Source: Obrimoposthia wandeli
Taxonomy: Eukaryota
Direction of reading: 5' to 3'
Length of the DNA: 64,000 nt
Assembly: GCA_977020255.1 (NCBI GenBank)
Contig: CDROCS010006451.1
Span: 1-64,000 of the forward strand
Translations under genes and position numbers: made by a program
Part shown: positions 49,336-63,654 of the stretch, piece by piece
How positions within the stretch are numbered: position 1 is the first letter of the stretch
Layout of the letters: each line of letters opens with the position of its first letter
The notes under the pieces: generated by a model
The model's database searches: none
What the model saw: the letters and a program-made list of their open reading frames with translations, nothing else
Told to the model about the DNA's origin: nothing

Positions 49336-50184
49336 ATGGAACTTTCAGATTTAAGAGTTTTTCAAGAAGTCGTTCTGTCAGGAGGCATAACGGCCGCCGC
49401 AAAAAAGCTCCATCGTGTACCGTCAAATATCACCGCCCGTATTCAAAAATTAGAACAAGAGCTTGATACCCCTTTATTTTTACGAGAAAAAAACCGTCTA
49501 CGCATCTCCCCTGCAGGAGAGCAGTTATTACCCTATGCCAAACAGATGATCAATCTATCTCAGCAAGCGATTAACGAGTTGCAGCAAACTGCCCCTAAAG
49601 GACGCTTAACCATCGGGGCCATGGAAGCGGTTGCCGCAACTCGGCTAACCGAGCCGTTGATGCGTTTTCACAAAGAATATCCAGACGTTGACCTGCAGAT
49701 TGAAACGGGCCCAACAGGCCAGCTAATCGAGAAAGTATTAGCTGGCAAGGTAGATCTTGCCCTAGTCGCCGACCCGGGAAAAGATGCACGCCTTGAGATT
49801 AGCAATATCGTTGAAGAAGAAATGGTTTTGGTTTCTGATTTAAAACATAAAAAAATCACCTCTACAGATGATCTAGGCCCAGAGCCAACCCTTTTAAGTT
49901 TTAACCATTTATGCGCTTATCGTAGCCGCATGCAAAATTGGGCCAAAGAAGGGGAAGTAGTAGCCAAAGTCATTGAAATTAGCTCCTACCATACATTATT
50001 GAGCTGTGTGACCGCCGGAATGGGAATAGGTATCATACCAAAGGTACTATTAGACAACTACCCTTTCGCCAGTAGTCTTCAGCAGCATTCGCTGCCAAAA
50101 CAGTGGCGCTACAGCACCACTGCAATTATCTGGCGTAAAGATAGCTTAAAACCCAGCATGAGCGCTTTCAGAGACTTTATCTAA
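49336..50184 (+). CDS. LysR-family transcriptional regulator
   Basis: LysR HTH (GGITAAAKKLHRVPSNITARIQKLE) plus substrate-binding domain. Confidence 0.95.
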   Translation: MELSDLRVFQEVVLSGGITAAAKKLHRVPSNITARIQKLEQELDTPLFLREKNRLRISPAGEQLLPYAKQMINLSQQAINELQQTAPKGRLTIGAMEAVAATRLTEPLMRFHKEYPDVDLQIETGPTGQLIEKVLAGKVDLALVADPGKDARLEISNIVEEEMVLVSDLKHKKITSTDDLGPEPTLLSFNHLCAYRSRMQNWAKEGEVVAKVIEISSYHTLLSCVTAGMGIGIIPKVLLDNYPFASSLQQHSLPKQWRYSTTAIIWRKDSLKPSMSAFRDFI

Positions 50185-54100: not shown

Positions 54101-54783
54101 CTTATCTTGATTTCGATAACGATGGCGCTATAAATCAGTACGAATTAAATAATGACTTACCCGCAGATGAAGCCAATATATTCGAAGCGATTAATTTATT
54201 AGAGTACTACCCTGTTGGGGATTTAGATTATTTCTATGTATCTGATAATCAATTTATTCGTACATCAATGGAGACTACGGAAATAGCTGGCCGCTTTAAA
54301 TTATCTTTCAGTAACGATACAGAGTGGCTTATTGAAAGAAGAAACAGTGGAATTTATTTGGTATCTTATACTGACCTTAAAAATGAAGTCAGCTACAGTT
54401 TCGAGAACTACCTGATCCTTCCTAACAGCCTTAAACCTGGCCATAAATTCACCTTAGCCGGCAAGCAAATTAGAGAAGGTGCTAGCGATTATTCTGAGGC
54501 CGAAAATACATTTTATTTAAAAGAAATTGGTGAAAAAGCGTGGAGAGATAAGACCTACCCTTCTGTCACGATTGTAGTTAATGGCATCGAAAGGATCTAC
54601 CTAAAAGGAATCGGAGAGCTCTCCTACCAGCAGCTCGAACTCGATAGCGTAAACTTCGACTTCATTAAAGTACCCGAAGTCGTAGCCCCAGAACAGAGTG
54701 AAACAAAAGCAGGTGCACTTGCTCCGTTTATATTCTTTTTGTTCTCTATGATGGCAATTGCCACACGAGTACGACGCAACTAA
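51199..54783 (+). CDS. Large secreted/surface protein with thrombospondin type-3 Ca-binding repeats and a C-terminal GlyGly-CTERM-like anchor
   Basis: Signal peptide ending SFA; DxDxDxxxDxxDNC...Q.D.D.D..GD.CD repeats; C-terminal KAGALAPFIFFLFSMMAIATRVRRN. Confidence 0.85.
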   Translation: MLSIKALRNLWLFISLGLATLFLPNTSFAALLDVQQKNDIVYFLFAAPNKIVRYDLNSNEFLAKISLAKIPTAFHVGETKIYTSYGKDLTQSDISGNTSSSIFQAVHEIEKLTLLGNYLYCVNSDNRIDIISTATYNKIQNNYYSSTVTDLVASSTQQSIFSVKGYSYTPSKMTLDETGKITHSINSPFSSSGPHASNVYLHPNENVIYTNKGSIYSAEDLSFKGTLTGSFTDIAFLGNRPVVIRENNVFIYSENNLDSKSFILDHMPSHVAAKDQIITSFVTTNSLVSAHQTNIDQLVEPTIIPAMDPTTSVYQTDLITTDNNNVVYLVDQENPAIHRRKAAEKEFASSWGLVETPNWITYSASHERLYLGYESGKITYFDTTKTGATEEVHFISLTNAIRALVSAGDYLFAKDAQYSSQTHSYSIDKQGIIIDNRSNNENSEEYVWNHLNGYIYQINTRYIRWTELLSSDGNFGIYKGSNYNSDNTYKFPLRISPNGQILLLGSGEIIGTNNQTVLNNLTNPIDDAAWINGNLATIKKGTNTLQFWQDDYLLSSEHQLSKTKNTRLFNLNEKLLIVKQSDTRPIFIYTDVVTISDSDDDSINDFDDNCEFISNVEQADLDQDDIGDVCDEDSDNDLIPNTIETAAGLDVLNKDDALLDLDGDGFNNFSEYLYTTDINDSESKPAAITVLAETFDSGILKGIYTLNPNNELVIIQEEDTHYLSTLVPQDPDQSTSFYYTGNFEQGLLELRYHLDGYRSYSLEIIIDGEAENPKNTFGGWEIIFLNLDSGAHTIEFKFTFSSEPNSSSQYNALLKIDYINYGLDADSDKVLDTLDNCPSVSNNYQQDSDNDGLGNECDNDPYGRDKDSDGYGDNRDNCPDDYNPDQLNIDNDYYGDACDDVDDRPSDVDQDGIPDHSDNCPNTANPEQANFDLDFLGDSCDLDSDNDGLLNTIEDQYDFLNAFDATDAYLDFDNDGAINQYELNNDLPADEANIFEAINLLEYYPVGDLDYFYVSDNQFIRTSMETTEIAGRFKLSFSNDTEWLIERRNSGIYLVSYTDLKNEVSYSFENYLILPNSLKPGHKFTLAGKQIREGASDYSEAENTFYLKEIGEKAWRDKTYPSVTIVVNGIERIYLKGIGELSYQQLELDSVNFDFIKVPEVVAPEQSETKAGALAPFIFFLFSMMAIATRVRRN

Positions 54784-54790
54784 ATTTTAT

Positions 54791-54823
54791 TGCAGGTCAT
54801 GTCATAAAAGTACATGGCCTGCA
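54791..54823 (+). terminator. Hairpin downstream of the TSP3 protein gene
   Basis: TGCAGGTCATGT...ACATGGCCTGCA inverted repeat, no clear U-tract. Confidence 0.45.
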
Positions 54824-54922
54824 TTAACATGATACATAGCAATCTTTGCACTACCTTACTTGCTCACCCAGTCCAAATATGAATTAATACAGCCTCATAT
54901 TTCTCTTCTAGGTCTAACCCCT

Positions 54923-55267
54923 GTGAAAATAAAGCACCTATTGGCGCTACTTATTATTATCACGAATACGCTCATCAATAGCGTATGGGCTTCTGTGCAC
55001 CTGGTTGCCGGAGATCACGACACCTTAGAAAGTCCTCACCTACATGTAGTTCCCGATTTAAAGACCCTACTCGACTTTGGCCAAGACATTGATGACAGTC
55101 TCCAAGGCGAAACCGAAGAAACACATTTTCATGTGTTAAGTGACTTAACAACCCAGTATTCTGGCAACGATAGCTTTAAAGCGAGCTTAAACATCAGTAG
55201 CTCCATTCCAAACTATCTTACACTCACCTATAGCCCACCGATTCCACCTCCAACCGCACACTCATAA
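54923..55267 (+). CDS. Small His-rich exported leader protein upstream of czcCBA (CzcI/DUF2946-like position)
   Basis: GTG start gives a signal peptide ending VWA; motifs HLVAGDH, PHLH, THFH; C-terminal YSPPIPPPTAHS. The ORF track starts it at TTG 54860. Confidence 0.7.
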   Translation: MKIKHLLALLIIITNTLINSVWASVHLVAGDHDTLESPHLHVVPDLKTLLDFGQDIDDSLQGETEETHFHVLSDLTTQYSGNDSFKASLNISSSIPNYLTLTYSPPIPPPTAHS

Positions 55268-55331
55268 ATACTCACGTTTAAACCACCCAAATAATCATTT
55301 ATTTCATAGCGTTATGCTATGTGGGATATTT

Positions 55332-56603
55332 ATGAACAAACACCTAATGCGTGCCCGTGTGGGCCTGCTAGTGATGGTGTGTAGCTTGCCTGCAATCAGT
55401 TTCGCTACTGCTAATGTCACAACAAGCGAAACCGAGGCCCAACAAGCTTCAGCGTCTCTATCGCTAAAACAAGCACTGCAGTTAACCCTGCAACAAAATC
55501 CTCAACTGAAAGCGTACCCTTATTATGTACGCCAGTTAGATGGTGATGTGACTCAAGCCAAATTAAGCCCAGTCCCTAGGGCAGAAATTGAACTTAGTTC
55601 AGATGAAGCGACCCTCACCTTAAGTCAGAATTTTGAATTCGGTGATAAACGACAATCCAGAGTTGGTTTCACTAACGCTAAACAAGCACAACTACAAGCC
55701 GAGTTTGAGATTGCTAAGCTGGATGTCCTCGCCGAAACCAGCCGTCGTTACTACCGACTACTCGCGTTACAGCAACAGAAAACCTTACTTTCAATACGCA
55801 TAGGCCAAGAAAAACGCGCATTGAAAATCATTAATAAACGCGCCAAAGCTGGGGCCGTTGCCCAAGCTGATGTTGCGAATATGGCGCTAGGGTTAGCACG
55901 CTCTAATAATAACTTAGAGCAGCTACAGTTCAGTATCAAATTGCAGAAAGATGCCCTAGCCGCAATGTGGTTAGGCCAGCATAGCTTCTCGCAATTATTG
56001 GGTAATTTATCCAAGTTACCGCCGCTGCCCGATGATGACGCTTTAACAAACATCATCACCCAAGGCATTAATCAGCTACCAGACTATCGCTATCAAGTTT
56101 CACTTTCTCGCTTAGCCGATAGCCGCGTTTCCTTAACTCAAGCCAATGGCAGCGCAGATTTAAATCTGGGTTTAGGTATGCGTCATAACGACATCAGTGG
56201 CGATCAGAGCTTAGTATTAACCGCTTCCATGCCGCTTAACTTTAGCAATCCTAATCGCGGTCGTATTGCCAGTGCTCAAGCTCAGCAAGCTTTAAGCTAT
56301 GAACAGCTTGAAATAAAGCGCCAGCAATTAAGTATTGAGCTCACTCGCATCCAGACCAATCTAGAAAAAGAGCTACGTTTAGCGAAGCGTATTAAAAAAC
56401 ACTTATTACCCCTTGCTAGCGAACTCCTAAGCACCACCCAAAAAGCCTATCGTCAAGGTCAATATACTGTATTGCAGTGGATCGATGCGCAAAACCAAGT
56501 GTTCAATTTAGAGCAGGACTTAATCAATAGCCAAGTCCGTATTTTCAATCAAGTATTAGAACTGGAACGCATTTTAGGCCAGTCAATTGTTACTGCTCAA
56601 TAA
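55332..56603 (+). CDS. czcC: Heavy-metal efflux outer membrane factor (TolC family)
   Basis: OMF helical repeats, NRGRIASA, AYRQGQYTVLQWIDAQ; first gene of an RND trio. ATG 55332 with RBS GGGA (ORF track starts 55314). Confidence 0.88.
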   Translation: MNKHLMRARVGLLVMVCSLPAISFATANVTTSETEAQQASASLSLKQALQLTLQQNPQLKAYPYYVRQLDGDVTQAKLSPVPRAEIELSSDEATLTLSQNFEFGDKRQSRVGFTNAKQAQLQAEFEIAKLDVLAETSRRYYRLLALQQQKTLLSIRIGQEKRALKIINKRAKAGAVAQADVANMALGLARSNNNLEQLQFSIKLQKDALAAMWLGQHSFSQLLGNLSKLPPLPDDDALTNIITQGINQLPDYRYQVSLSRLADSRVSLTQANGSADLNLGLGMRHNDISGDQSLVLTASMPLNFSNPNRGRIASAQAQQALSYEQLEIKRQQLSIELTRIQTNLEKELRLAKRIKKHLLPLASELLSTTQKAYRQGQYTVLQWIDAQNQVFNLEQDLINSQVRIFNQVLELERILGQSIVTAQ

Positions 56604-56613
56604 GGTATTTCTG

Positions 56614-57669
56614 ATGAATTTATTAAACGATATAACCCGTAAAGCATTTTTAATTTTAGCCCTAACGTCTACAGGCTTTATAAGTAGTGTGAGTTCTAGT
56701 GACGACCACGAAGAACATAAAGATCAAGCTGAGCATACCGAACACAACGAAGAGCATAATGAAGAAGAAGGTCATGATGACGCTGACCATGAAGATAGTG
56801 ATCATATTGAAAAAGATGACGGCCATGGTCACGGCCACGGTGGCGAAGATGAACACTCCGAAAGTACGGAAATTTCTTCTTATTACATCAAGGTTTCCGG
56901 CATCAAATCAGAAGCTGCAAGTTCACAAAAACTGATGCAAGTGGACACCCTATTCGGAGTGATTTCGCCAGTGCAAGACCAAGTCTTTAGCCTTCATGCC
57001 GCATTCCCAAGCATGATCGAAAAAGTCTTTGTTCAAGTCGGCGACCAAGTGAAGAAAGGGCAAACTATTGCTCGCTTAACCAACATCAAAACCTTGCAAA
57101 GCTACTCCCTTAAAAGCCCATCACAAGGTGAAGTCACTTCGCGTTCGGTCAATACCGGTGATCGCGTAGACGCTGAAGAAATCATACAAGTCAGTGATTT
57201 ATCCAAAGTCTGGGTTAACCTTTCCGCCTTCCCTGAAAATGTTGAGCGTTTAAAGAAAGGCCAGCGTGCAAAAATTTATGATCTTCATGATCACGAAAAT
57301 TCAATCGGAGAAATTAGTTACATAGCCCCACAAATGAGCGGCGGTCACATTGCTCGAGCACGTGCAATTATTTCGAACAACAAAGGCCACTGGCGTCCAG
57401 GTATGCACGTAAAAGCCGATGTAGAAGTTTCAACTCGCAACGTGCCTATCGCAGTAAAGGTTGATGCCTTGCAAACGATGGAAAATAAAACCGTCGTCTT
57501 CAAGCGTCACGACAATACCTTCGAAGTGACTCCAGTAGAAGTAGGTGAACAAGATGGGCAATGGGCAGAAATACTTTCAGGCTTAGACGCAGACAGTGAA
57601 TACGTCAGCGAAAATAGTTTTCTAGTGAAAGCCGACATCCTAAAGAGTGGAGCAAGTCATGACCATTAA
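56614..57669 (+). CDS. czcB: Heavy-metal efflux membrane fusion protein with His/acid-rich N-terminus
   Basis: VGDQVKKGQ, WRPGMHV, EILSGL, C-terminal ILKSGASHDH; N-terminal His-rich tract. Confidence 0.88.
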   Translation: MNLLNDITRKAFLILALTSTGFISSVSSSDDHEEHKDQAEHTEHNEEHNEEEGHDDADHEDSDHIEKDDGHGHGHGGEDEHSESTEISSYYIKVSGIKSEAASSQKLMQVDTLFGVISPVQDQVFSLHAAFPSMIEKVFVQVGDQVKKGQTIARLTNIKTLQSYSLKSPSQGEVTSRSVNTGDRVDAEEIIQVSDLSKVWVNLSAFPENVERLKKGQRAKIYDLHDHENSIGEISYIAPQMSGGHIARARAIISNNKGHWRPGMHVKADVEVSTRNVPIAVKVDALQTMENKTVVFKRHDNTFEVTPVEVGEQDGQWAEILSGLDADSEYVSENSFLVKADILKSGASHDH

Positions 57670-57711: not shown

Positions 57712-60700
57712 ATGATTAACCATTTAATCGCCTTCGCTATCGAAAGGCGCTGGCTAGTAATGACCATGACATTATTATTAGCCGTTCTGGGTATCTATAA
57801 AACAACCCAGTTACCAATTGATGCCGTACCCGATATCACCAACGTACAAGTACAAATTAATAGCTCAGCTCCCGGATACTCTCCCCTAGAGGCCGAGCAA
57901 CGTATTAGCTATAGCATTGAAAATGCCATGGCAGGAATTCCGAAACTGGATTATACCCGCTCACTATCACGCTATGGGCTTTCACAAGTCACCGTGATCT
58001 TTGAAGAAGGCACTGATATCTATTGGGCACGCCAGCAAATCAGTGAACGCCTTCAAGGTATTCAAGGTGAATTACCTGCGGGTATTGAACCCAATCTTGG
58101 CCCTGTTGCCAGTGGCCTCGGTGAAATTTTCACTTATGCAGTACAAGCAGAAGTTGATGCTGTCACCGATGAAGGTAAACCTTATAGCGCTGAGGATCTC
58201 AGAACCATCCAAGACTGGATCATTCGACCACAGTTAGTGAAAGTCCCCGGTATTACTGAAATTAATAGCATGGGCGGCTATGCCCGCGAATATCAAGTGG
58301 CCCCAATTCCGGGAAAACTTTTTGCTTATAAAGTCACCATGAATGAACTGGTAGAAACGCTAAGAAAGAACAATCAGAATTCTGGTGCAGGTTACATCGA
58401 ACGTAACGGCGAGCAATGGCTAATTCGTTCACCTGGCCAGCTGAATAACTTAGAAGAAATTGCGCAACTGGTGGTTACTCGTCGCGACGATGCCCCGGTA
58501 CGCATTAAAGATTTAGCGGAAGTGAAATACGGCAAAGAACTCAGAACCGGATCAGCTACCTTTAGTGGTGAAGAAACGGTATTGGGTACAGCCTTTATGC
58601 TGCTCGGCGAAAACAGCCGCACAGTATCAAAAGCCGTGGCAAAAAAACTGATCGAGATTAACGACTTTTTACCCCCTGGTATTAATGCCGTTCCTTTATA
58701 TGATCGCACTACTCTAGTCGATAAAACCATTGCCACCGTACGTACCAATTTATTCGAAGGTGCCGTATTAGTGATCGCTGTTTTGTTTGCGCTACTGGGT
58801 AATATTCGGGCGGCACTGATCGTTGCGACGGTCATTCCTTTAAGCATGTTGTTTGCGATTACCGGCATGGCGATGAATCGTGTTTCTGGCAACCTAATGA
58901 GCTTAGGAGCCATCGATTTTGGAATCATTGTTGATGGCGCCGTCATCGTGGTTGAAAATGCGTTACGCCGCTTAGGCTTAGCCCAGAAAAAATACGGCCG
59001 CTTATTAACCCTGCCCGAACGTTTATTGGAAGTCACCGAAAGTACCAAGGAAGTTTTCCGCCCTGCGGTCTTTGGTATGTTAATCATCATGCTGGTGTAC
59101 TTACCTATTTTCGCGCTCGCAGGTGTTGAAGGTAAAATGTTCCATCCCATGGCCTTTACCGTTGTTGCCGCTTTATCCGGCGCGTTGATTTTCTCGATTA
59201 CTTTTGTACCCGCTGCAGTCGCCATTTTGGTAAAAGGTAAAGTAAGCGAAGAAGAAAACATCGTGATGGCAAAAGCACGTCGCCTCTATCAGCCGTTATT
59301 AAAAGCCGCGTTGAATAACAGTCCTATTGTTTTCATTGCTGCGATCATTTTGGTCGGCGCAACAGCGTATCAATCGACTCGCTTAGGCAGTGAATTTTTA
59401 CCGCAATTAGATGAACACGACATTGCCTTACACGCTATGCGCATTCCCGGCACGGGCATAGAGCAAGCCACTGAAATGCAGTTGTTATTAGAAAAACGCA
59501 TTATGGAATTTCCAGAAGTGAAACATGTGTTTTCTAAAATCGGAACTGCCGAAATTGCGACTGATCCTATGCCACCGAATGTTGCCGATACCTTCTTGAT
59601 TTTAAAACCGGTAAAAGATTGGCCTAATCCAGAAAAGCCGAAACAGCAATTAGTTGATCAGATTCGTAACGCCATTGAAGAAATTCCGGGCAATAATTAC
59701 GAACTTACCCAACCGATTGAAATGCGTTTTAACGAACTCATCTCTGGCGTGCGTGCCGATGTCGCCTTAAGAATTTACGGTGATGACTTAGAAACGCTGG
59801 CGCAAATAGGCGGCCAAGTTTCACAGCTATTAGCTAAGGTTGCTGGCGGACAAGACGTGCGTATGGAGCAAGCGAAAGGCCTGCCGATGATTTCAGTTAT
59901 TCCACAAAGAGATCATCTGGCTCTGCTAGGTTTATCCGTTGCCGATGTACAAGAGACTTTGCGCTCGGCTGTCAGTGGCATTGAAACAGGATTGATTTAC
60001 GAAGGTGATCGTCGTTTTAAATTGTTGGTGCGTATGGATGAAAGCTTAAGCAGAGATCCAAAAGCCCTCGCGCAAATTCCTGTGGCTATTCCTTACCCGA
60101 GAAGCCCTGATGACGAAAAATCAGAATTGGATTATGTACCGCTCGGTGAAATCGCCGACATCGTCGAAATCCAAGGTCCGAATCAAATCAATCGCCGCAG
60201 CGGTAAGCGTAATATCGTCGTCAGCGCAAATGTGGAAGACCGCGACCTAGGGTCTTTCATTGCCGAGACACAAGCATTGATGCGTGACGAGCTAAAACTC
60301 CCCGCAGGCTATTGGTTAGAATACGGCGGTACGTTTGAACAGTTAGAATCTGCTAGCCAGCGCTTAAGTATTGTTGTGCCGATTACTCTGATACTTATCA
60401 TAGGCCTGCTCTACAGTGCCTTTGGTTCAATACGCGATAGCTTGATTATTTTCACCGGCGTACCCCTCGCATTAACCGGCGGTATTATCGCGCTCACGTT
60501 AAGAGACATGCCACTATCGATTTCTGCAGGCATTGGCTTTATCGCGCTGTCTGGGGTTGCGGTCTTAAATGGCGTAGTGATGTTATCGTTCATTAAAGAA
60601 CTACGTGAAAGTGGCTTAGAGCTGACTCAAGCGGTATGGCAAGGTGCAAGCCAGCGCTTACGTCCTGTATTGATGACAGCGTTAGTGGCTAGTCTTGGTT

Positions 60701-60858
60701 TTGTACCGATGGCGTTTAATACGGGGACTGGCGCTGAAGTTCAACGACCGTTAGCGACGGTAGTGATTGGTGGGATTATTTCTTCGACGCTATTAACGCT
60801 CGTGGTATTACCGACGCTTTATCAGTGGGTCTATTCTCGTTTCAAAGGCAGGGCTTAA
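57712..60858 (+). CDS. czcA: Heavy-metal RND transporter CzcA/CusA family
   Basis: LPIDAVPDITNVQVQIN, GAIDFGIIVDGAVIVVEN, HPMAFT, RLRPVLMTA, EVQRPLATVVIGG. Confidence 0.95.
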   Translation: MINHLIAFAIERRWLVMTMTLLLAVLGIYKTTQLPIDAVPDITNVQVQINSSAPGYSPLEAEQRISYSIENAMAGIPKLDYTRSLSRYGLSQVTVIFEEGTDIYWARQQISERLQGIQGELPAGIEPNLGPVASGLGEIFTYAVQAEVDAVTDEGKPYSAEDLRTIQDWIIRPQLVKVPGITEINSMGGYAREYQVAPIPGKLFAYKVTMNELVETLRKNNQNSGAGYIERNGEQWLIRSPGQLNNLEEIAQLVVTRRDDAPVRIKDLAEVKYGKELRTGSATFSGEETVLGTAFMLLGENSRTVSKAVAKKLIEINDFLPPGINAVPLYDRTTLVDKTIATVRTNLFEGAVLVIAVLFALLGNIRAALIVATVIPLSMLFAITGMAMNRVSGNLMSLGAIDFGIIVDGAVIVVENALRRLGLAQKKYGRLLTLPERLLEVTESTKEVFRPAVFGMLIIMLVYLPIFALAGVEGKMFHPMAFTVVAALSGALIFSITFVPAAVAILVKGKVSEEENIVMAKARRLYQPLLKAALNNSPIVFIAAIILVGATAYQSTRLGSEFLPQLDEHDIALHAMRIPGTGIEQATEMQLLLEKRIMEFPEVKHVFSKIGTAEIATDPMPPNVADTFLILKPVKDWPNPEKPKQQLVDQIRNAIEEIPGNNYELTQPIEMRFNELISGVRADVALRIYGDDLETLAQIGGQVSQLLAKVAGGQDVRMEQAKGLPMISVIPQRDHLALLGLSVADVQETLRSAVSGIETGLIYEGDRRFKLLVRMDESLSRDPKALAQIPVAIPYPRSPDDEKSELDYVPLGEIADIVEIQGPNQINRRSGKRNIVVSANVEDRDLGSFIAETQALMRDELKLPAGYWLEYGGTFEQLESASQRLSIVVPITLILIIGLLYSAFGSIRDSLIIFTGVPLALTGGIIALTLRDMPLSISAGIGFIALSGVAVLNGVVMLSFIKELRESGLELTQAVWQGASQRLRPVLMTALVASLGFVPMAFNTGTGAEVQRPLATVVIGGIISSTLLTLVVLPTLYQWVYSRFKGRA

Positions 60859-62456: not shown

Positions 62457-63598
62457 TTAAAGCACCACTAAATTATCAATGTGTATTAATTCTTCTTCGC
62501 CAACGTAACCCAACAACTCTTGCTGTTGCTCGCTGGTTTTGCCACATAATTTTTGTGTTTCGCTTTGGTCGAAATTAATCAAGCCCTTAGCGATCACTCG
62601 GCCCTTGCTATTCAAGCACGCAACCACTTCGCCGCGACGGAAAATACCTTTTACAGCTTTCACGCCGATCGGTAATAAACTATTGCCACCCCTCTTCAAT
62701 GCCTTCACAGCACCATCATCAAGAATGAGTTCTCCGGCATGCTGAAGATGTCCTGCAATCCACTGCTTGCGTGCCACTTCGGGCTCGGTATCAGCGACTA
62801 AAAGCGTACCAATTTTTTCTTTAGCGCGTAAACGGGTTAAAACGTTTTCAATGCGACCACCGACAATCACCGTATCCGCACCTGAACGTGCAGCAACACG
62901 CGCGGCTTTTACTTTAGTGATCATACCACCACGACCTAGCGCACCACCATCACCTGCCATACCGGCAAATGATTCATCCGATGCACGGCCTTCGGTAATT
63001 AACTCAGCATCATCATTATGGCGTGGATCTTTAGTAAATAAGCCATCTTGATCAGTCAGAATAACCAGTGTATCGGCATCAACCAAGTTCGCAACTAAAG
63101 CGCCCAACGTATCATTATCACCAAAACGAACACCCGTAATAACCGTATTTCATTTTCGTTGACGATCGGCACAACGCCCATTTCAATTAACGTGCGCAAA
63201 GTCGAGCGCGCATTAAGATAGCGTTGGCGATTGGATAAATCAGCGTGGGTTAATAAGATTTGTGCGGTGTGTTTATTGTGCTGTTTAAAAGCCGTTTCGT
63301 AAGCTTGAACTAAGCCCATCTGGCCAACAGCCGCGGCCGCTTGTAACTGATGAACTTCACTAGGGCGTGTAGTCCAGCCTAATCGAGTCATGCCTTCGGC
63401 AACGGAGCCTGAAGAGACTAAAACGATTTCAATGCCTTGCGACATCAAGTCACTAATTTGATCAACCCAAGCTTGGATGCCTGGGCGATTAAGACCTTTA
63501 CCATCATTCGTGAGCAGAGCACTGCCAATCTTAATAACCCAGCGCTGCCCCGATACGAGGCGCTCTCTGGCGGTATTTAAATCAACAGCTGGTTTCAT
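62457..63598 (-). CDS. proB: Glutamate 5-kinase with PUA domain, frameshift near 63130
   Basis: [28 protein letters not shown]; then [15 protein letters not shown] and a PUA domain. Confidence 0.96.
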
Positions 63599-63654
63599 TG
63601 CTCTTGCTCTCACGTCTGACTTATTGTCTTTTCAACCTCTCTAAGAAAGAGGGC

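Follow-up and report, generated by a model that had tools for sequence, protein, structure and literature searches.

A candidate CutF-type leader peptide in front of a czcCBA-like metal-efflux operon in Oleispira-like DNA

Does a short open reading frame (ORF) in front of a czcCBA-like efflux operon encode a protein that works after its export, or does it control translation of the operon in cis while it is being made? The locus lies in a stretch of 64,000 nucleotides (positions 1 to 64,000, forward strand, of contig CDROCS010006451.1 in the Obrimoposthia wandeli assembly GCA_977020255.1), here called the window, whose sequence is Oleispira-like gammaproteobacterial; related loci come from Oleispira and Thalassolituus metagenome-assembled genomes (MAGs). 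An initial annotation of the window had proposed that a ribosome paused on a polyproline run near the end of the ORF would free the ribosome-binding site of czcC, so that export and metal binding of the nascent leader could tune efflux. Our analysis confirms the observation behind this proposal and partly supports its interpretation. The comparative evidence fits an exported, metal-binding cis leader with a proline run coupled to a helix that sequesters the Shine-Dalgarno (SD) sequence and AUG of czcC. By analogy with CutF, the copper-responsive leader of Rhodobacter capsulatus, we give about an even chance that the 114-aa ORF is a leader of CutF type acting in cis on a czcCBA-like operon for divalent-metal efflux. 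It is likely a His-only member of a CutF-like, CzcI-like kind, with the mechanism itself already known from CutF.

The leader peptide and its family

The leader is divided as follows:

54923..55267 (+): leader ORF, CutF-like/CzcI-like, 114 aa, with a GTG start at 54923 and a TAA stop at 55265-55267
54923..54991 (+): predicted Sec signal peptide, residues 1-23, MKIKHLLALLIIITNTLINSVWA, with cleavage between VWA and SVH
54998..55045 (+): distal His cluster, H26, H32 and P38-H39-L40-H41 (PHLH codons 55034-55045)
55124..55132 (+): proximal His motif H68-F69-H70, 39 residues ahead of Pro109
55235..55252 (+): PPIPPP codons, residues 105-110, a candidate pause or arrest motif dependent on elongation factor P (EF-P)

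Translation of 54923-55267 bears out the features that were first read from the sequence, namely a signal peptide, clustered His motifs and PPIPPP four codons before the stop. The proline run is followed by T-A-H-S and then the stop codon, giving the C-terminus YSPPIPPPTAHS. Inspected by eye in the translation, the signal peptide shows K2 and K4 in its n-region, a hydrophobic core, V at -3 and A at -1, and residues 3-28 form a confident helix in an AlphaFold2 (AF2) model, with a predicted local distance difference test score (pLDDT) of about 91. H26 is the third residue of the predicted mature chain. No Cys is present in the 114 aa and consequently no CXXC, CxxxC or CxxCH motif; in hhalign comparison the HxH of the leader stands where the Cys metal motif of DUF2946 or CzcI proteins would be. 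The C-terminal RAPP motif of CruR type is also absent, with PPIPPP found instead. Searches of Pfam and NCBIfam returned zero matches for the leader at E values up to 1, including DUF2946 (PF11162) and CzcI (PF28244, NF045614), and a PDB sequence search with the leader-family profile gave no match. All four features of the rule-based definition of CutF-like proteins (<150 aa, PP in the last 15 residues, signal peptide, same-strand neighbour; Ozturk et al. 2023, PMC9973294) are found in the leader. A TTG at 54860 was considered as the leader start and rejected: it lies inside a conserved non-coding element, and relatives start at a GTG or ATG equivalent to 54923.

Close relatives indicate selection on both the peptide and its mRNA. 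Among these relatives, 42 homologues were found, 32 loci were fetched and 22 distinct Oleispira/Thalassolituus junctions were compared. With a dN/dS of 0.09 at a dS of about 1, the leader ORF is, judged by its substitutions, a real gene under purifying selection. PPIPPP is invariant as amino acids while its Pro codons vary freely at synonymous sites, and it is therefore the peptide motif that is selected. The last sense codon of the leader, in contrast to the two preceding residues, which vary, is always TCA (GCA in two relatives), and therefore indicates a constraint at the RNA level. At the other end of the ORF, the first 23 codons (54923-54991) have a dS of 0.50 versus 1.27 in the body, and codons 2-5 (AAA ATA AAG CAC) never vary; together these observations suggest a further RNA-level constraint around the start.

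Exhaustive HMMER and profile searches extended the family by more than 40 distant homologues of 20-35% identity, which are unnamed or annotated as 'hypothetical' and include one from Marinobacter lipolyticus; none of 75 profile matches (0/75) carries a Pfam domain. Counted on 61 aligned sequences, H26, H41, H68, H70, P105, P109 and P110 are invariant, H39 is nearly so, and PPxPPP is kept throughout (61/61). The c-region of the signal peptide is well conserved family-wide (consensus NSVWAS.H), with L17 in at least 90%. Three residues ahead of H26 stands A, G or S (53/61), and cleavage at that point would leave an X-X-His N-terminus resembling an amino-terminal Cu(II)/Ni(II) site. The tail after PPP measures two residues in 37 of the 61 sequences, four in 20 sequences of the Oleispira clade and seven or eight in three.

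The genomic context of the family is similarly uniform. At 11 of 12 distant loci the leader directly precedes an OEP-CzcB-CzcA operon, and an OEP gene and an adaptor gene likewise follow a 53%-identical paralogue in a Thalassolituus MAG. The remaining distant member (P0061, L046:3001-4117) stands before HupE/UreJ. This context matches that of two reported His-only clusters of CutF-like proteins that precede HupE/UreJ (PMC9973294) and hence, by analogy, hints at Ni or Co as the ligand of the family.

The proximal metal motif and the proline run stand at a constrained distance from each other. H70 and Pro109 are separated by 39-42 residues in 61/61 sequences, with a segment in between that is only about 25% conserved, and the H41-H68 linker spans 19-53 residues. 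AF2, supplied with the 61 sequences, predicted no folded mature domain: the mean pLDDT of the leader model is 59.5, only the signal helix is confident, and the mature region (pLDDT 40-60) is without secondary structure. Because of this lack of a predicted mature fold, the fixed HxH-PPP length is unexplained by structure. A comparable distance is seen in the CzcI family, with 38-39 residues from CxxCH to PDRPQ in 29/29 sequences, and in CutF, where about 42 residues between metal motif and PPP can be computed from published numbers (118 aa, 90 aa mature, C41xxxC45 in mature numbering, PPP at 114-116; PMC9973294; 10.1101/2025.02.05.636593). The spacing of 39-42 residues thus offers a testable design rule, under which insertions or deletions in this segment should break sensing.

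The helix between leader stop and czcC start

The leader stop is separated from the czcC AUG by 64 nt. The RNA elements of this junction are:

55262..55276 (+): 5' arm of the long-range helix, TCATAAATACTCACG, comprising the last codon UCA, the stop UAA and then AUACUCACG (anti-AUG and anti-SD)
55305..55321 (+): inner hairpin CAUAGC/GCUAUG, directly 5' of the SD
55320..55335 (+): 3' arm, the czcC translation-initiation region, TGTGGGATATTTATGA, with SD GGGA at 55323-55326 and AUG at 55332-55334

The two arms form 9 Watson-Crick pairs, a bulged A at 55326 and then 4 Watson-Crick and 2 G-U pairs; both this complementarity and the inner hairpin are exactly as the initial annotation had described them, and the 3' arm does hold the czcC ribosome-binding site and AUG, which are now precisely located. 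Folding of the region, which had been recommended as a check, returned the stem as both the minimum free energy (MFE) and the centroid structure of 55225-55350 (-17.6 kcal/mol, z = -2.1, equalled by 7/200 shuffles). Using one pre-set 16-nt window from the last sense codon, we found stronger pairing with the czcC start region for this stop-proximal window than for any of the 343 other leader or spacer windows (p = 0.003), and comparison with 500 shuffles gave p = 0.008; an earlier sliding duplex ranking over 16 offsets was noisy. No intrinsic terminator was predicted between leader stop and czcC start by a consensus scan, and an attenuation terminator at this position is therefore unsupported. 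An Rfam search of 54700-55450 at permissive thresholds returned one chance-level match only. We did not accept the in-frame ATG at 55314 as the czcC start, since it falls within the hairpin and relatives do not keep it as a start codon, having it out of frame or not at all.

Both arms of the helix are conserved within a spacer that is not. The 22 junctions have spacers of 62 to 131 nt that for the most part cannot be aligned, yet TCATAAATAC at the leader stop and GGGATATTTATGA at the czcC start hardly vary, despite saturated synonymous sites. Pair counting shows 94% of cells paired, and 100% in the inner hairpin, one pair of which has undergone a compensatory change from A-U to G-C in 5 sequences. 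The junction alignment, from which the initial annotation had expected a conserved PPxPPP and compensatory base changes, thus agrees with it as regards the motif and the near-invariant stem arms, and only in part as regards compensation, which is limited to the inner hairpin.

Distant loci show a related arrangement built from other sequences. Their spacers measure 66-275 nt and are unrelated in sequence. Most of these loci carry CUCC or CUUCC 0-2 nt past the leader stop, pairing with the GGAG-type SD of the OEP gene, and the flanks of the CUCC core change together with their partners between loci (CUCCGC/GCGGAG, CUCCAA/UUGGAG, CUCCC/GGGAG). For ten distant czc loci combined, which are partly related and not fully independent, the stop-proximal pairing gives a Fisher p of 7e-7 under a position null and 2e-5 under a shuffle null. 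The distance between PPP and the helix is 10 nt in Oleispira, close to the 5-9 nt of loci with two-residue tails; it stays this short despite a tail that is two codons longer because the 5' arm has shifted so as to take in the last codon. The family-wide stop-proximal anti-SD and the fixed HxH-PPP spacing are the most useful additions of this analysis.

Stalling, termination and the sign of the response

The arrangement described above has an experimental precedent. CutF (cutFOG operon) has a Sec signal peptide and a CxxxC motif and ends in PEPEGPPPRL-stop, and a stem-loop past its stop contains an anti-SD, CTTC, that shields the cutO SD (PMC9973294; 10.1101/2025.02.05.636593). It acts in cis only and requires the signal peptide, the metal motif and PPP; copper induces the stall and thereby switches on the detoxifying gene, a PPP-to-PAP change abolishes induction, and efp deletion makes CutF-controlled expression independent of copper (PMC9973294; 10.1101/2025.02.05.636593). 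CutF is degraded after export (PMC9973294). The initial annotation held that an efflux pump would need a logic opposite to that of CruR. CutF shows such a logic, since its copper-induced stall turns on a detoxifying gene; the idea already had a precedent (PMC9973294).

In an equivalent mechanism, the leader would carry its Sec signal peptide and enter the periplasm while still being translated. By the time the ribosome arrives at PPIPPP, the distal His residues (H26, H32, H39, H41) would already be outside the membrane and the proximal HFH, a fixed 39 or more residues behind the peptidyl-transferase centre, would be just leaving the ribosome-translocon conduit. Metal bound to the His residues, with Ni, Co, Zn or Cu(II) as plausible ligands, would alter ribosome dwell over PPIPPP-TAHS-stop. 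As long as the mRNA is free, the last codon and the stop, together with the nine bases that follow, would pair with the czcC AUG and SD and block czcC initiation, and a ribosome held over the leader end would keep the 5' arm single-stranded, allowing czcC, and czcBA through coupling, to be translated. That the leader is exported, binds metal and stalls the ribosome is inferred here, as is the direction of the response, which we take from CutF and from the needs of an efflux pump.

Several observations weigh against this reading. With Pro2 in the P site (55247), the leading edge of the ribosome (+13 to +16) falls at 55259-55262 and so just touches the 5' arm at its first base; for Pro2 and Pro3 taken together, it gets no further than 55259-55265. 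As computed by constrained partition-function folding, a ribosome with Pro1 or Pro2 in the P site changes the accessibility of neither the SD nor the AUG. For the AUG, opening (from 0.00 to about 0.5) begins only from P-site Pro3 at generous reach, or from the Thr codon on, and it peaks at 0.72 when the ribosome is terminating (P site 55262, whole 5' arm covered). The original proposal that a PPP-paused ribosome reaches the 5' arm and frees the ribosome-binding site is consequently borderline: the first base of the arm is reached, but folding keeps SD and AUG paired. In addition, when the 5' arm is covered, the SD (UGGG) can re-pair with a CCCA at 55286-55289 that is present in only part of the clade. 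PPP pauses are normally resolved by EF-P. As for the outer helix, members of the Oleispira clade show no compensatory, two-sided changes in it, and its support within the clade therefore comes from conservation and not from covariation; in one relative (L009) the lower helix is weakened. In 5/12 distant loci, where the Pro codons are themselves CCUCC-like, the SD finds its MFE partner within the Pro codons or ahead of them. The mature region has a dN/dS of 0.07 in Oleispira, which would also fit a functional mature protein. No RNA sequencing run was found to contain the locus. On geometry alone, termination-coupled unwinding or stall-release appears to fit at least as well as stall-induced opening. 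We still favour the CutF-type model because CutF, with the same PPP-x-x-stop layout, turns expression on by stalling.

Part of this evidence suits a protein that acts after export. The terminating ribosome covers the whole 5' arm while the PPP-stalled one does not, and the anti-SD stands 0-4 nt past the stop in most loci and is therefore placed relative to the stop. Both observations, along with the low mature-region dN/dS, would be expected if coupling were constitutive and the leader were a secreted, His-rich, largely disordered periplasmic metal-binding protein acting in trans on CzcCBA, as chaperone or quencher. The helix would then just couple czcC to termination, and PPxPPP would be a structural or interaction motif or a CadC-like copy-number tuner, not a sensor. 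CzcI offers a precedent for such a protein, as a periplasmic quencher of CzcCBA activity in Cupriavidus (PMC10127602) and as a zinc chaperone in Acinetobacter (10.1101/2020.10.20.348086), and the leader family aligns collinearly to the CzcI family in hhalign at 63.6% probability. Passive coupling, however, leaves unexplained why an invariant PPxPPP should stand within 2-4 residues of the stop, and why the HxH-PPP spacing should be held across poorly conserved sequence that has no predicted fold; and CutF, with the same layout, works only in cis and does not persist after export (PMC9973294). We regard this explanation as possible but rather doubtful.

The folding results are also compatible with a response of the opposite kind, in which the intrinsic pause on PPIPPP is the OFF state and a metal-compacted His segment pulls on the chain and releases the ribosome to the stop, the ON state. 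Here the sign would be that of CruR, and untranslated czcC could additionally permit Rho-dependent polarity. In constrained folding the PPP-stalled state equals free mRNA in its SD/AUG pairing and opening occurs only past PPP; CruR is a precedent for metal-relieved arrest with Rho-dependent termination; and since the leader is without Cys, the disulfide-versus-copper argument made for CutF cannot apply to it. This scheme predicts the opposite of what is seen in CutF, where PAP switches expression off and removal of EF-P switches it on (10.1101/2025.02.05.636593). With EF-P present, moreover, an intrinsic PPP pause may be too brief to serve as an OFF state, and we judge stall-release improbable.

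The remaining alternative concerns transcription and depends on an element upstream of the leader:

54841..54892 (+): conserved upstream element, candidate promoter or operator, about 30-80 nt ahead of the leader start

This element of about 50 nt (ATCTTTGCAC..CCTTACTTGC..AAATATGAATTAAT) is nearly invariant in 11 aligned upstream regions, that of the 53%-identical paralogue (L010) among them, while its flanks diverge. Judged by this conservation it may be a promoter plus operator. Transcriptional control therefore probably exists as well, a further point to be set against translational control by the leader. Together with the lack of covariation in the outer helix, it would agree with a leader that has no role in cis, a stem that stabilises or processes the mRNA, and metal control that is purely transcriptional through a trans-acting factor. 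On the other hand, the helix specifically buries SD and AUG, the arrangement recurs with different sequences in distant loci, and both arms are invariant despite saturated synonymous divergence. No metal regulator gene is found within about 5 kb of the locus, in line with the initial annotation, which had noted no adjacent czcRS or other regulator; the nearest regulator is a LysR gene (49336-50184) adjoining sulphur-transport genes. Purely transcriptional control appears quite improbable.

The efflux operon and related leaders

Downstream of the leader, three genes follow on the same strand:

55332..56603 (+): czcC-like outer-membrane factor (PF02321 OEP, E = 1.5e-29)
56614..57669 (+): czcB-like periplasmic adaptor (HlyD_D23 match; His/Asp/Glu-rich N-terminus)
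57712..60858 (+): czcA-like pump of the heavy-metal efflux resistance-nodulation-division (HME-RND) type (PF00873, 1026 bits)

The czcA-like translation carries the motif DFGIIVDGAVIVVEN, which matches DFGxxxDGAxxxVEN, the divalent-cation signature of HME-RND pumps. The adaptor matches TIGR00999 (CzcB/NccB) with E 4e-35 and 121 bits, under the model cut-off of 319 bits. The three genes thus supply the OEP, membrane-fusion protein and signature-bearing RND pump that define an HME-RND CzcCBA system. Upstream of the leader, an imperfect 12-bp inverted repeat at 54789-54823 (TGCAGGTCATGT ... ACATGGCCTGCA) lies just past the stop of a gene for a 1194-aa thrombospondin-type-3-repeat protein; it is kept in some relatives and is probably the terminator of that gene. 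Further downstream, at 62457-63613 (-), a glutamate 5-kinase (proB-like) frame is split into overlapping ORFs at 63095-63613 and 62457-63107, which represents either a frameshift or a sequencing error.

The closest known counterpart is CutF, a DUF2946-like protein. The two leaders are alike in length (118 versus 114 aa), in combining a Sec signal peptide with a metal motif about 40 residues before PPP, and in an anti-SD helix that shields the SD of the next same-strand gene, of metal-detoxification type in both. CutF has two residues after PPP, as do most members of the leader family, while the Oleispira leader has four. They differ in that the leader's ligands would be His only, with no Cys and no Pfam DUF2946 match; that CutF controls a multicopper oxidase whereas the leader precedes a divalent-cation HME-RND pump; and that the 5' arm of the leader takes in the last codon and the stop, burying not only the SD but also the AUG. 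The mechanism is established by experiment for CutF and is proposed from sequence for the Oleispira leader. The commonest neighbour of CutF-like genes is the OEP of an RND system (CusC, CzcC or SilC), while the His-only CutF-like clusters were reported before HupE/UreJ and not before czcC, where the present leader stands; the supplement of that paper has no text on Oleispira or on clusters 14 and 17 (PMC9973294).

Two other kinds of arrest peptide are less similar. CruR of Bordetella pertussis, a DUF2946 upstream ORF before bfrG, likewise pairs a metal motif with a C-terminal Pro-containing arrest motif and exerts post-transcriptional control over a downstream metal-transport gene. In CruR, however, the motifs are CXXC and RAPP, copper relieves the arrest, the output is Rho-dependent termination, the signal peptide is dispensable, EF-P is not involved and the target functions in uptake rather than efflux. 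SecM, MifM and VemP share with the leader an exported nascent chain and a C-terminal arrest point just before an SD-sequestering helix, and in these systems force or translocation status sets downstream translation. They differ by monitoring the export machinery and controlling secA, yidC2 or secDF, through unrelated arrest sequences that have no metal ligands.

CzcI resembles the leader in order of parts and in position. We read czcI from Cupriavidus metallidurans pMOL30, where it lies directly upstream of czcC; members of its family carry PF28244 or PF11162 and show a signal peptide, HLGHHEHxH, a variable linker, DCGxCH, 38-39 residues, PDRPQW, three residues and the stop. Signal peptide, His-rich motif, variable linker, second metal motif and a conserved Pro motif near the stop, 38-39 aa past that metal motif, all have their equivalents in the leader. 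The differences are the Cys motifs of CzcI (YCxHE, DCGxCH), its ending, PDRPQWxxLA rather than PPxPPP, and its description as a mature periplasmic protein acting on CzcCBA (PMC10127602). Among 21 members of the leader family there was one DUF2946 match (E 0.007) and one CzcI match (E 0.002), with single-member CzcI matches at E 0.002-0.09. The family-to-family hhalign comparison covers 104 collinear columns with E 6.8e-5, and comparison of the leader family with a single CzcI sequence gives 9% probability. The leader family is possibly a remote relative of CzcI, the profile comparison being suggestive and no proof of homology. At the pMOL30 czcI-czcC junction itself (L051:15470-15620), a single-sequence fold pairs the czcI codons before APDRPQW with the czcC start (-47.8 kcal/mol, z = -2.0), a model by which classic czcI may also act in cis.

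To our knowledge, exported nascent peptides that sense periplasmic metal to set translation of the next gene have experimental examples for copper only (CutF, CruR). The leader described here is His-only and stands in front of an RND pump of Zn/Co/Cd/Ni type that has neither a two-component system nor a MerR regulator next to it. In its broadest form, the CutF-type reading would make this unnamed, Cys-free family of marine Gammaproteobacteria (Oleispira, Thalassolituus, Marinobacter and metagenomic lineages) a transmembrane nascent-chain sensor of divalent metals (Ni, Co, Zn), with an amino-terminal X-X-His site left by signal-peptide cleavage and an HxH motif that stands exactly one ribosome-translocon length (39-42 aa) from the PPxPPP pause site, and the main switch of czcCBA operons that have no regulator; we put this forward tentatively, as a possibility more apt to fail than to hold. 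If it is true, the spacing of about 40 residues in CzcI and CutF would be a general rule of the class, classic czcI would also work in cis, and the principle would reach beyond copper to other metals, and also to RND outer-membrane factors, the commonest class of predicted targets. Induction of czcICBA in Cupriavidus is reported to be independent of CzcRS (PMC10127602), for which a cis-acting leader may be a possible explanation.

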